Positions 8,301-44,005 of a DNA stretch of 64,000 nt are shown in pieces; positions within the stretch are counted from its first letter, which is position 1, and the number at the start of each line of letters is the position of its first letter. Below the pieces are notes generated by a model, which saw nothing but the letters and a program-made list of their open reading frames with translations, made no database searches and had not been told where the DNA came from. This stretch comes from Trichosphaerium sp. ATCC 40318 (lineage: Eukaryota > Protista > Tubulinea), in the NCBI GenBank assembly GCA_038496445.1, contig JALMLS010000460.1, forward strand, positions 13,239 through 77,238, given 5' to 3'. The position numbers were made by a program, and so were the translations under genes.

Positions 8301-10301
8301 ATGGTACGTCCCAGCACGTGGCTTACATAAACTGTTTTAAAACGCGTGCTCATCAGTGTAATGTAGTACAAAACAGCAGAAAACAAAATACCTGAACAAA
8401 AGAAAGTGGTCCTCATTGGTTAGCCTTTCTACTCTTTGTAATACTAACAGTAATTTAGGAAGTTGTGGTGCGGGTAAAACTGTACTTTTGCAACGCTTAA
8501 CACAACACGTATTCTCGTCTTGTTACACCACTGTACATATAAAACATGTCTTCCATTAAAGCAATCGTTCTAGTTCCTTCAACGTCTATTATAAGCAATC
8601 ATCGTCTCTATTTCACATCATTATTAGAATTCTATCGAGCGTCCGATTTCAACATTAGATAGGCGTCCACTTAGCAGTGAAACAACTATATTTTGATAAC
8701 ACTACTGTGACTCTTGCGATATATGCAAGTACTATAATTTAGAATAGAATCAAACAAAATATCATGCAGCATTTTTTTTAACTTGTATTTGTAGGATACT
8801 GCAGGTCTGTTGTTTCAAGCGGAATTTTGCTCATTATAATTGTAGGTCAAGAGCGATTTAGAGAACTATTCCAAGTATGAAATTGAGCTGAACTGTTTAC
8901 TATTTGACATCTTGTTAAACACGTTCATATTAGATGTATGCCAGAGGAGCCTTGGGGATCATGATTTTTGTTGACATTATTGATGATCCAAGTCTTAAAC
9001 ACCCAATCCTATGGTGCAAAGAAATAAGCAATGTTCTATTCCCTGGCACTCAAGATCCTGTTCCTACTCTTCTTATTTTAACCAAGGTACTTCAATCAAT
9101 ACTCTTTCAACAGAATGCTGACAAGCAGAATAGTGTGACTTGAAACGCTACCAGGATTTCAAAAAGAGTGATGATGAAATGGATAACTTTTGTGAAGAAC
9201 ATGGATTCCTCACGTGGTTTGAAACATCAGCAAAGGACGATTATAATGTTTTAGAATCCTTCATGTATATGGCCAAAGAAATACTAAAAAGAGAAGAGAA
9301 TGTCATGAGTTCACATACACCTGCCATGAAGCTTCCGATAACAATTGCTGAAAGACCAACACATGTACCATTTTGGAGCCGTATTTTTCGACAGAAAGAA
9401 GGAAATCAGACAAAAAGGCTTGTATATGATGATAATACAAAGCAAACACTCAGTTTGGATAAATATAGGCCACATGCTCTCCCCAAAAAACCCTCAATCA
9501 TACAAAATACCACCAAGGCGCAACAGACCTACAAGGAGTCGTATCAACGCCAACCTGCCGCTGTTACAAGTCGAAGATCAGTGAAGCAAAATTCCACAGT
9601 GACACCAGTAATCAGTACAGACGACAACAGAGATAAGAAGGCCAACGCAAAAAAGATAGAGCGTGCAGAGTTGAAAGAAGATCCAAAAGAGAAGTACTTG
9701 TCAAAAGCGCTTGTAGATCCCAATCGCGATTACACCAAGTTTGGAGATGATCCTGACCATCTTGATATTATTCAAGACGCTCTTGAAGCGTTTGAAATAC
9801 AGCAACACCAAAAAGACCAAAGTAATGAGGTATGCGTTAGAAAGATTTATGTAGTATCTTATGTACTGTTTAGTCAACTGAACCAAATACCAATGACTTT
9901 CTAGTGCAAGAAAATCATCAAAATTTGATAAAAGATAAAAGTTATTCGTCCATCATAGATGCAGTATCTACAAATTCATGGATAGACAAAGATAGTTCCG
10001 TGAATGAAACAAAGGTAGCCCAACTTCAATTACTTATTACGTATCTATGTCATTTATTTAGGCAACATTCAGTCCTCCTTCAACAACTTCAACGTACCAA
10101 CAGCCTAACAATGAACTTGATTGGAAAGAAAGACTTGTCAAGGTAGGCGTTGCATATGAAAGAGCACAGGAACTTGGATCATTGATGAATGAAGCTGTCA
10201 TCAAGCTGACTGATATTACTGGTAGTATTTTAGAAGCGTTGGGATTCAATGCAATGGAACGTATCACAATCATCAAAGCCAAGAAAAATATGCTACTTTA
10301 A
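8301..10301 (+). CDS. Rab32/38-like GTPase with extended C-terminus and SAM-like domain (copy 1)
   Basis: ATG-only first exon; GSCGAGKT, DTAGQERF, LTKCD, FCEEHGFLTWFETSAKD (Rab32/38-like); tail ends DWKERLVKVGV...ERITIIKAKKNMLL*. Confidence 0.85.
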
Positions 10302-10698
10302 TGCAACTGTTGTTTAGTACGTACAAATAAAAGAAAAATTGTTATTGCTGTTACTTTTTCTTTTTCTTGAATTGTTTTAACTTTTGGATTAGTCTTCTTA
10401 GCGCATGGATTGATCCAACAAAAAGCGCACAAGAAAAAGAACCAAAGGGGTAGGGATGCAAATCTTCAAAAAGCATCCAGCACTAATAGTGTTGTTAGAA
10501 TAGAGTTATTTCGATTTAGGTTGCCTGTTTTTATGCAGCAAAACAAACACTTTAAAACAAGTGAATACAATCATGTGTAAGACATGTGTCATAAAACCTT
10601 CAAAACATTGTATTGCACCAGGCGATAATCTAGCGGCTTACAATGACTTAATGGCTCTAAGTCGCGTGGTATTTTTTTTTATTGTCTGTACCTCTACG

Positions 10699-11538
10699 AT
10701 GAATCAAGTGTTATCACTACAAAAGCTACTAGCTGAGACATTAACGCATATTCTACGCTATTTAAACAAAAAACAGCGTATTACAGCATCTGCTGTATCG
10801 CACGTGTTTAACGACATTGTTAGACAAAATATCGGCTTTGTTGTTATCCGTGTGAAATCGCCAGCGGATTGCCTTGTTCTCAAGGGCAGTCCTCTTCTTA
10901 AAAATACTAAAATTAATTGTAAATTCTCGCAACTATCAAAGGATGACATGGCTTGTCTTTCTGGAGTTCAAGCTATAAATCTACGTGAATCAAAAATAAC
11001 TGATGAAGGTATCCTTGCATTAGTACAAGGAAGTCAGTATATTCGTGAAATTAACTTGGACAACACATAAGTGACGGATGTTTCGTTAAAAGCACTGAAA
11101 GGTGTACATACAATTTCCCTATATGGTTGTATTGATATTACTGCGGAAGGAATAGAGGCACTTAAAGATGTTCACAGCATTACAATACGAGATCCGGAAG
11201 ATTCATGGCTCAAACATCTTGGCAATGTTCATAGTGTACACATAGCAGCTGGAGGGAGAATAACAGACGTTGGGATCAAATCTTTAATAAATGTCAAGCA
11301 CTTAGATATGAGCTTTTGTTATGAGATAACAGACGAAGGTATAAAGCATTTGGTTAGTCTTGAACAACTCAATTTATGGAATTGCACAAGCATTACAAAC
11401 TCTTGCTTGAAGCACTTAAAGTCTCTAAAGTGCATTGAACTTCATTATAAGACTTCAATTACGGCAAAGGCTGTTGAAGCACTTGGGATACGTTGCATCC
11501 AAGACCAATACTATAACTTGCCTTTGGTGACTAAGTAA
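10699..11538 (+). pseudogene. Intronless F-box-like/LRR protein with an in-frame TAA at 11068-11070
   Basis: LQKLLAETLTHILRYL F-box-like start; LKGVHTI/ITDEGI LRRs continue in frame across the stop. Confidence 0.7.
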
Positions 11539-41574: not shown

Positions 41575-41801
41575 CTAATTATGCATTCGCTAGGCATGTG
41601 CTACATAGTTCCTGCACATTGTAGCTGTACTTTATGTAAAGGCTTGAGTGTGCGAAAAGCACCTCAACTTCAAAATAAAGGGCGTGTCTGGGTTAGTGTA
41701 TCTTAATTAATGAACAGTTGGAAGGCAACATCATATTTCAAAATCCATGTAATATTGGTAGTTCATACTACAGCATTTGTGTGATATTAGGGCCCTTTGT
41801 G

Positions 41802-44005
41802 TCAAAGCAAGTTGTTCCTCTTTGCTTTGATGACTTTGATACGTTCACTGATAGTGAATCCAAGTTCTTCTAAAGTATGTCCAGTAACATCAGTCACTCT
41901 AACTACCACATCGTTCATCAATGATCCAAGTTCTTGCGCTCTTCTATTTTCAATGCCTACCTTGACAAGTCTTTCTTTCCAATCAAGTTCTTTGTTGGGC
42001 TGTTGGTGTGAAGTCATTGAAGGAGTGAATGTTGGCTAACAGAAGTTAACTTTATTGATAATGAGGTGGTGTAGCTACACCTCAGGATCGCCAATGAAAC
42101 TATCCTTTTCCATCCATGAATCTGCAGACCCTACAACATTGGATACTACAACGCCCATCATGGAAGACAAAGAAGCAACATCTTTGTATTCTTCAAACAT
42201 GACAGGAGTACATTGCTTGCTAGGATTGTCAAACTATGGGGTATCGTGTTAGAAATTACCTTTGTGAAATACTGTTATTTACTTGCAACAAGTCAAATCA
42301 TTTGAGTAAAGATGTACCTTGTTCAAATATTGTTGAGCTTGTAGTGGCATATCACTTGATAAGTTTTGTGTATTATTAGGAAGGTAATTACCATTTTTTG
42401 GATCAAACTATACAAATTAAAAAAAATTAGTGACACAGTAAGTCAGCTTGAAGTTGAACCAACATGTTGTTTAAAAGTACTCTACCTCATCAACATATTC
42501 CTCTTTGTTTTGTTGTATATCGGAGGATTTTAATGCATCTTTGATCATGTACATATGGTCTGGTGAGTCTCCAATCTTGGTGTACTTGTGATTGGGGTCA
42601 ATCAAAGCCTTTGACAGCTTGTGTTCTGTTTTCAAATTTTCACAAATCTCTTTAAATGGTTTCAAGTTGTTGTTCTTTTCGTCATTCTCTGTATTGATTA
42701 CTGGTACCCTGGTGGTATTTTGTTTCATTAGAATTGACCGCTCAAGGAGACCACAAGGATGAGTTTGATCAACCTTAGAAGGGAATTTCACACGTGGAAC
42801 TGATTTGTCACCTATGTTTTTTGCTAGAACTTCTGGCGGTTTCAGAACTTTGTTTTCTACTAATTCATCTTTTTCTCTTTTTTTGACTATTTCTTCAACC
42901 AAATACAAGACAGATTCATCGATGTTGATATTTTCTTTTGCTGACACTTCAAACCACGTTAGGAATCCATGTTTTTCGCAGAATTGTTTCATCTCATCAT
43001 CACTTTTGGTAAAATCGCTTGACGCTCTCTTGTCAATCTAAGCTTGTCAGCCAGCTCCATTTCTAGAATTTTATACGATCTACTTAAAATAATTGACATA
43101 CTTTGTTTAGTAGAAGTATAGTAGGAACAGGATCTTTAGTGTGTTGTAAGAAAGTGACATGAATATCTTTTAAATATTGATGCCATTGTAGGCATGCTTT
43201 TAAAGTTGAGTCGTTTGTAATATCACATACAACCATGACACCCGAAGCATTCCTAAAGTATGACCACTATTTAGCATTAGTGGACATCTTAAACATGAGA
43301 TAAAACAGTAGAGCAACAACTGTACTACAGAAAATGTGAGTAAAATGTACATCATGTAATTCTCCCTTATAACCTACATAGAATAACTACTTAACTGTTC
43401 CAAAGACATACCTGGAATATCCTACAAATGCAAGTTAAAAAAAGCTTGTAGTTAGATCTTTACCCATATTTTGAGCCTCACGGTGGCGTCATCAATTTTT
43501 ACCTCTGTTGAAGCCACCTCTTTATTATACTACACAGAACTAAGACAAAGGAAAGCAACATTTAATATCAAGTAAGGAACTAGCCAAGGAACTGCTTCTC
43601 ATTACATTGCCAGTAAAATTCAAAGTGGAAAATATGAATGATCTTACGCACAGTGAAATGAATCTTGTCGTCCAAATGGTCACGTGTGAAGCGATTTACT
43701 ATTGAAGATTTACCCGCACCTGTAGCCCCTACATTTGCATTAGGTATTTCACTGTTTATCTTGTCGAATTTCTATACAATGAAACAACAATTTAAGTAAT
43801 AATAAGAGCGAACCTACAAATACCACTTTCACTTCATGTGGTTTGTTTTCTGATGTTTTAGACTACCCAGCGTTAGTAGGCATTGAATACTTGTTTCCTC
43901 TCATAAGCCGTTGGGTTTACAGACAATAAAAAGTAATGCGATAGTAATTTACCAGTTACTAATTGGTTTACGTACAACACGTGCTTTTACAGCTTGTTTG
44001 GACAT
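41802..44005 (-). CDS. Rab32/38-like GTPase with SAM-like tail (copy 5)
   Basis: GATGAGKS; KIW|DIPG|; FCEKHGFLTWFEVSAKENINID; LSKALIDPNHKYTKIGD; last exon nearly identical to copy 4. Confidence 0.8.

Follow-up and report, generated by a model that had tools for sequence, protein, structure and literature searches.

A C-terminal cassette with a predicted SAM tail shared by Rab32-like and RCC1-propeller genes of an amoebozoan gene cluster

A stretch of 64,000 nucleotides (nt) of Trichosphaerium sp. ATCC 40318 (contig JALMLS010000460.1, positions 13,239 to 77,238 of the forward strand), hereafter called the window, contains a cluster of genes encoding two unrelated kinds of protein that end in the same way. 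Between the start codon of gene A (position 8301) and that of gene E (44005) lie five Rab32-like GTPase genes (A to E) and two RCC1-propeller genes (F and G). According to pairwise and profile alignments, the C-terminal cassettes of the two kinds of gene are homologous and stand on unrelated N-terminal modules. The cassette is collinear throughout and consists of a KFG/acidic-helix motif (motif 1), a SWxDK motif (motif 2) and a domain of about 60 residues encoded by the last exon, which modelling assigns to the SAM fold. As read from the predicted proteins, the association of a Rab32-like or RCC1 module with this cassette is a new domain combination. The reading favoured here, to which we give about an even chance, is that of a birth-and-death gene cluster, in which different N-terminal modules acquired a single C-terminal cassette through exon shuffling and exchange among paralogs.

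The shared cassette and the fold of its tail

Gene models were built by hand and with a small, purpose-written spliced aligner, splicing being deduced from the sequence and from the transcripts of relatives, and the searches for the cassette covered the whole window. A first-pass annotation had proposed that five Rab-like and two RCC1 genes with unrelated N-termini end in the same three motifs in the same order. A six-frame motif scan and tblastn searches with each part of the genes recovered these motifs where they had been reported, motifs 1 and 2 each occurring in five Rab-type and two RCC1-type copies. The tail exon was found in six intact copies and one decayed copy, with no others in the 64 kilobases. 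The decayed copy belongs to gene B (about 12293-12417) and can be read only with at least four frameshifts; hence the intact tail has been lost from the end of gene B. Motif 1, which follows the pattern KFG...D-hydrophobic-[DE]-hydrophobic-hydrophobic-x-[DN]-A, is acidic, helix-prone and amphipathic, as illustrated by its variants HLDIIQDA, DLEILENA and DMDAIEDA.

The last exons of the Rab-like and RCC1 genes align without gaps, as had been suggested, with 20 of 57 residues identical (about 35%; BLASTP E value of 2e-13 in a single comparison). The spliced cassettes of A, C, D, E, F and G, together with that of the database protein P0122, form a collinear alignment of about 170 residues. Comparison of the Rab and RCC1 profiles with hhalign gave 98.5% (P 3e-15) for the whole cassette and 78% (P 1.7e-5) for motifs 1 and 2 without the SAM domain, while the profile-profile alignment of the tails, which the first-pass annotation had put forward as a decisive check, was significant at 97.8% (P 1.3e-12). 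The possibility that motif 1 is itself a degenerate first SAM domain of a tandem was rejected: MAFFT stacked motif 1 on the tail, yet hhalign gave a P value of 0.32 for this match.

The exon plan of the cassette is the same in both kinds of gene. Motif 1 ends an exon and is followed by a phase-0 intron, a motif-2 exon of 37-51 codons, a second phase-0 intron and a tail exon of 73-79 codons. The intron that had been annotated after the motif-2 peptide (NSWIDK or QSWMDK) was located about 10 codons downstream from SWxDK in both kinds of gene, and is predicted from its splice sites to be a phase-0 GT..AG intron of 41-49 nt. In gene F, in which every intron is in phase 0, the propeller exon and the cassette are also parted by such an intron. 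Symmetric phase-0 exons of this kind are what exon shuffling requires. Furthermore, the conservation of the cassette is well above that of the adjoining introns and flanks.

An AlphaFold model of the tail, built from an eight-row alignment, reached a predicted local distance difference test (pLDDT) score of 89.6 and contains four helices as assigned by DSSP. When this model was compared with the PDB using Foldseek, the top match was the second homology domain of Sla1, SHD2 (3idw), with a template modelling (TM) score of 0.82 and a root-mean-square deviation of 1.6 Å across 61 of 65 residues; tankyrase, SAMHD1, BICC1 and further SAM domains came next. An independent full scan with VIA-align also placed 3idw first (Z 10.4), the next rows, at Z 5-7, being mostly SAM domains (more than 30 of them). 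Similarly, a shape search of the ESM Atlas retrieved Sla1-family clusters with TM scores of 0.80-0.81 and C19orf47/SAM_4 clusters with TM scores of 0.75-0.76; a feature search of the same atlas found nothing. The tail of P0122 scored about 15 bits on the Pfam SAM_4 model, which is below the cut-off of 23.6. According to the model, the tail is a SAM fold of the SHD2/SAM_4 type, which bears out the SAM fold expected by the first-pass annotation and is more specific than its term "SAM-like". In a model of the contiguous cassette of P0122, made with tail rows only in the alignment, the SAM part was confident, the segment DMDAIEDALN of motif 1 formed a low-confidence helix and the region of motif 2 was disordered. 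SHD2 is described as having a SAM fold, as tending to form head-to-tail helical polymers and as binding a variant clathrin box (LLDLQ) located upstream within the same protein (review PMC9499636).

The carrier genes and their turnover

The GTPases of the cluster are Rab32-like, as indicated by similarity comparisons of exon 8 of gene A, which encodes the C-terminal part of the GTPase including the G5 motif SAK. This exon matched Rab32 at 2.7e-10 and Rab38 at 9e-9, compared with 1.5e-4 for Rab29 and 2e-4 or weaker for other Rabs; the assignment to Rab32/38 is drawn from this one exon, the G4 exon being uninformative and the others too short or too divergent to classify. A word-indexed protein search with Rab exon 8 gave no matches. 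The nucleotide-binding motifs G1 to G5 of gene A are complete (GSCGAGKT, TIGV in switch I, DTAGQERF, TKCD and SAK), its first exon consisting of the ATG only. Gene E follows the exon plan of gene A and carries GATGAGKS in G1, DIPGY in G3, which is devoid of the catalytic glutamine, NKID in G4 and SAK in G5.

The three other Rab-like genes are damaged. In gene B, the region of the switch-II (DxxGQ) micro-exon, corresponding to G3, is lost, and motifs 1 and 2 can still be read. In gene C, the P-loop exons are undetectable, the switch-I exon has a 1-nt deletion and the guanine-binding motifs are degenerate; a 23-base-pair (bp) tandem repeat lies upstream. In gene D, no start codon was found in the exon that holds the ATG in A and E, and the nucleotide-binding motifs are degenerate (ELPGQD in G3 and TRSD in G4). 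Introns in the window are many and very short (38-130 nt), of the GT..AG type and often with a CTAAC-like branch site, GCAAGT donors occurring occasionally. The 10-nt micro-exon of the Rab-like genes (Table 1) is flanked by introns of 38-70 nt, and the intron preceding it in A and B has a GCAAGT (GC-AG) donor.

Rab GTPases are defined in part by a C-terminal lipid anchor. No C-terminal prenylation cysteine (CC, CXC or CAAX) was found in A, which ends in KAKKNMLL, or in E, which ends in KAKRNNLL, and the tail exon is devoid of cysteine. Since no copy has a C-terminal cysteine, the prenyl anchor, a defining feature of Rabs, is absent.

The propeller of gene F is, on the strength of its profile matches, a seven-bladed RCC1-like domain, strong but generic. 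It matched the Pfam models PF25390 (201 bits, cut-off 150), PF00415 (128.6 bits) and PF13540 (110 bits). Compared with solved relatives, it resembles UVR8 (1.6e-36), HERC2 (4.5e-34), HERC1 (2.8e-30) and RCC1 (4e-29), and in these similarity comparisons no specific likeness to a known Rab exchange factor was found. Its best public relatives are 32-37% identical. Gene G repeats F in inverted orientation and has lost 1 nt of the propeller exon near 39048. The two genes differ at 34 residues, clustered at few spots (blade loops) of the first five blades, with a ratio of non-synonymous to synonymous substitution rates (dN/dS) of 0.53; these two features are weakly consistent with the fast evolution that the first-pass annotation had attributed to the cluster. 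Duplication of a Rab-like gene and an RCC1 gene as one unit was considered and rejected, as the repeat shared by F and G stops about 70 bp outside the RCC1 gene. Gene F also has a duplicated 19-codon mini-exon (31911-31967) that is missing from G, comparable to the duplication of motif 2 in gene D. A third RCC1-like gene fragment lies at 61843-62381 on the minus strand, with blades 30-37% identical to those of F, and tblastn detected no KFG/SWxDK/SAM cassette for it within the window.

The Rab-like genes bear traces of exchange. At the DNA level, D and E share 93.5% identity in the tail exon, compared with 66-73% in their remaining parts. Gene D is a mosaic, in which the motif-2 exon is closest to that of C (90.6%) and exon 8 is closest to that of A (88%). 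Between the two motif-2 exons of gene D, only the truncated beginning of a tail exon survives (about 36845-36950), which matches the corresponding stretch of gene B at 90% identity. As judged from these identities, tail exons have demonstrably moved between paralogs, and the duplicated motif-2 exon of D with its partial tail is best read as the fossil of an unequal exchange. With copies gained, exchanged and lost in this way, the cluster is, from the comparison of its members, one that evolves by birth and death in a lineage-specific manner.

The tail is very rare outside the window. When the tail profile was searched exhaustively with HMMER against 1.84 billion protein representatives, four matches were returned, two of which are low-complexity repeat proteins, taken as spurious. 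The two genuine carriers, P0122 and P0123, are both protist transcriptome proteins. P0122 (254 residues), from the transcriptome of the amoebozoan Trichosphaerium sp. ATCC 40318 (MMETSP0405), is the closest relative of the cassette and has all three of its parts behind a third type of N-terminus, unrelated to Rab or RCC1. By eye this N-terminus is C2-like, an assignment that is not claimed here, as it had no Pfam match. P0123 (596 residues), a complete frame from an MMETSP transcript, combines an RCC1 propeller with a SAM tail and has no clear SWxDK motif. Its propeller is 36% identical to that of F from end to end, and the tails are about 40% identical. The RCC1-SAM fusion hence goes back at least to the divergence from the organism of P0123 and is not a recent local accident. 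In addition, its expression as one mRNA in P0123 gives indirect support to the splicing deduced for the genes of the window. A word-indexed protein search with the tail of P0123 returned only P0123 itself, and pattern scans for further relatives of the cassette in metagenome contigs and viral contigs found nothing.

Taken together, the homologous cassettes on unrelated N-termini, the phase-0 introns, the moved tail exons and the third N-terminus of P0122 support the shuffling of a common SAM tag, as the first-pass annotation had proposed from the sequence.

Table 1. Positions of the clustered genes and of their parts in the window
Feature	Position	Strand	Description
Rab-like gene A	8301-10301	+	10 exons, complete 487-codon frame
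Gene A, exons	8301-8303, 8367-8418, 8459-8532, 8659-8724, 8795-8804, 8846-8874, 8934-9086, 9134-9829, 9874-10014, 10062-10301	+	
Gene A, predicted SAM tail	10062-10298	+	Sla1 SHD2/SAM_4 type, in the last exon
Rab-like gene B	12203-13855	-	Pseudogene
Rab-like gene C	25663-27299	-	5' truncated; 3' half and full cassette open
Gene C, cassette	26105 (end of motif-1 exon), 25944-26060 (motif-2 exon), 25663-25902 (tail exon)	-	
RCC1-propeller gene F	30548-32405	+	5 exons, complete 551-codon frame
Gene F, exons	30548-31606 (propeller), 31654-31857 (motif 1), 31911-31967, 32021-32134 (motif 2), 32184-32405 (SAM tail, predicted)	+	
Rab-like gene D	35089-37395	+	Open from exon 2; tail exon 37156-37395
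Gene D, duplicated motif-2 exon	36685-36804 and 36996-37112	+	
RCC1-propeller gene G	37908-39662	-	Inverted copy of F, 92% nucleotide identity; tail exon 37908-38129
Rab-like gene E	41802-44005	-	10 exons, complete 452-codon frame
Gene E, exons	43976-44005, 43814-43862, 43652-43728, 43464-43529, 43412-43421, 43351-43373, 43102-43266, 42486-43037, 42081-42233, 41802-42035	-	
10-nt micro-exon, gene A	8795-8804	+	Codes for D-T-A-(G) of DxxGQ (switch II; D-x-x-(G) across paralogs); conserved, canonical splice sites
10-nt micro-exon, gene C	27166-27175		As above
10-nt micro-exon, gene D	35892-35901		As above
10-nt micro-exon, gene E	43412-43421		As above

Competing readings of the cluster

In the favoured reading of a birth-and-death cluster with a shuffled cassette, the carriers of the cassette are a Rab32-like GTPase without lipid-anchor cysteines, a seven-bladed RCC1-like propeller and the third N-terminus known from P0122. 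The SAM domain would self-associate head to tail and, once assembled, could bring the modules attached to it to a common scaffold or concentrate them there. In the GTPases, this may stand in for the missing prenyl anchor, and the two linker motifs may act as docking or autoinhibitory peptides, in analogy with the binding of an upstream peptide by Sla1 SHD2. Oligomerisation, recruitment and any contact between Rab-like and RCC1 proteins are steps that we infer.

Several observations weigh against this reading. The splicing of the window genes was read from the sequence and not from their own RNA, and complete frames are present in only three of the seven genes. The tails of the window had no Pfam match at E<=1 and reached the threshold of no SAM model, the tail profile matched no solved SAM domain in a HMMER search against solved structures, and the linker motifs of the P0122 model are of low confidence. 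Furthermore, many SAM domains do not polymerise, and the SAM tails of the two kinds of gene share only about 35% identity, so that they could form separate rather than mixed assemblies.

If the favoured reading holds, a Rab32-derived family with a SAM domain in place of its anchor would represent a new way of positioning a Rab-type switch in the cell. A rare tail common to RCC1 propellers and Rabs also leads to a concrete, experimentally testable hypothesis, namely that the tails co-assemble and that the propeller acts on the GTPase. The locus itself offers a clear natural example of exon shuffling, in which phase-0 cassette exons, exchange of tail exons between paralogs and the fossil of a partial insertion are found side by side. 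However, the weight of the finding is limited by the damage seen in over half of the local copies.

A possible, though somewhat doubtful, alternative is that the cassette serves as a general tag for localisation or oligomerisation, that the Rab and RCC1 proteins are functionally unconnected and that they share it only because unequal crossing-over and gene conversion passed exons between neighbouring genes. The clear mosaicism of the Rab-like genes and the partial tail insertion preserved in D are what such donation would leave behind, and the tag-like nature of the cassette is suggested by its occurrence on the unrelated N-terminus of P0122 and by the SAM tail of P0123, which does without a clear SWxDK. 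However, the RCC1-SAM fusion dates back at least to the split from the organism of P0123, and the rarity of the cassette, together with its repeated co-occurrence on these modules, would still need to be explained.

The first-pass annotation went further and regarded the RCC1 proteins as putative partners of the GTPases. If the two formed a dedicated pair of GTPase and exchange factor, or of GTPase and effector, the RCC1 propeller would act on the neighbouring Rab32-like GTPases, the shared SAM tails would hold enzyme and substrate together and the whole might be part of an anti-pathogen module. RCC1-like domains do include exchange factors for Ras-superfamily GTPases, the Rab-like and RCC1 genes sit together in the cluster and have a rare cassette in common, and F and G differ mainly in their blade loops. 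Such a pair is nevertheless improbable, since the propeller is about equally similar to UVR8, HERC2, HERC1 and RCC1, which are mostly binders and not exchange factors, the duplication that gave F and G covers the RCC1 gene alone, the Rab-type and RCC1-type tails are distinct subtypes, E lacks the catalytic glutamine and the guanine-binding motifs of C and D are degenerate. Of the working GTPase/partner module that had been proposed, the shared cassette is retained, while neither the pairing of Rab and RCC1 proteins nor a role in defence finds support in these comparisons, and four of the seven genes look damaged.

A more elaborate proposal, and a distinctly improbable one, is that a cell-autonomous recognition system of amoebae uses the SAM_4-type cassette as its assembly tag, and that in this system diversified RCC1 propellers would bind a ligand and SAM co-polymerisation would recruit the non-prenylated Rab32-like GTPases to a target, for example a pathogen-containing vacuole. 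If true, this would amount to a polymer-driven signalling assembly made from parts not known in such use.

Finally, it is very unlikely that the cluster consists mainly of dead DNA, as a set of decaying pseudogenes without present function, because, despite the frameshifts, lost exons or missing start codon of B, C, D and G, genes A, E and F have complete multi-exon frames with canonical splice sites, the 10-nt micro-exon is kept in A and E, the cassette is conserved well above neighbouring introns and flanks, the dN/dS of F and G is 0.53 and not about 1, and such genes are expressed in relatives.

Surroundings of the cluster and comparison with known systems

The window has a G+C content of about 36%. 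Between 20000 and 23600, it rises to 0.47-0.50 with a strong strand skew, the plus strand encoding long threonine/proline-rich repeats of the PTTEA type, whose product looks mucin- or extensin-like; VVGAS open reading frames (ORFs) on the antisense strand are regarded as spurious. Two ORFs that sit between the Rab and RCC1 genes, at 16384-16842 on the plus strand and at 29456-29905 on the minus strand, have weak Pfam matches to PriCT_1 (primase C-terminal domain, E 0.0017) and to a poxvirus D5-like protein (E 0.008), and may be relics of giant-virus or Polinton-like insertions. The neighbouring genes include an F-box and leucine-rich-repeat (LRR) gene (10561-11538, plus strand), a second LRR gene, of the "GVHTI" type (59364-60281, plus strand), and a MORN_2-repeat gene whose start is F-box-like (32740-33360, minus strand). 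F-box/LRR and MORN_2 families are typical of amoebae and of amoebal giant viruses.

The palindrome CACGTG occurs at 51 sites in the window (e.g., 8315, 13975, 35022 and 43978), compared with 9.7 expected from shuffled sequences, and these sites are spread over the whole stretch, many of them in first introns or close to gene starts. A role of this hexamer as a shared regulatory element of the Rab gene starts was considered and rejected: because it is over-represented five-fold across the entire window, it is not specific to the Rab-like genes.

The propellers of F and G have the seven-bladed RCC1 architecture in common with RCC1, HERC1, HERC2, UVR8, SERGEF and RPGR. They differ from these proteins by the C-terminal KFG/SWxDK/SAM cassette, and none of the characterised members of the family is specifically close to them.

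For the tail, the closest known counterparts are SHD2 of Sla1 (3idw) and SAM_4, which is also found in C19orf47; all have the same predicted or solved fold. The likeness to Sla1 extends beyond the fold, as SHD2, like the tail of the cassette, is preceded by a linker with a short conserved acidic/hydrophobic peptide. However, SHD2 and the tail are about 21% identical in sequence, the cassette proteins contain neither SH3 nor SHD1 domains, and motif 1 differs from the LLDLQ clathrin box of Sla1, so that the comparison of these peptides is one of analogy only.

Gene A resembles Rab32, Rab38 and Rab29 in its G1 to G5 motifs, including TIGV and DTAGQERF, and the best match of its exon 8 is to Rab32/Rab38. 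In contrast to these GTPases, the products of the cluster have no prenylation cysteine and carry an extension of 200-300 residues that ends in the predicted SAM domain. In addition, NKxD is replaced by TKxD, KKLD or TRSD in paralogs, and the catalytic glutamine is missing from the DIPGY of E.

The replacement of a prenyl anchor by another device has precedents among Ras-like GTPases, Rheb and others having made such a change in protists (PMC5869587). The GTPases of the cluster are similar to these cases in that the C-terminal lipid anchor has been lost and another targeting device, here a putative one, has been gained. They differ in the nature of this device: among the replacements listed in the abstract of that paper there is no SAM domain, whereas the GTPase of the present cluster is a Rab32-like protein that carries a predicted SAM domain and two linker motifs.

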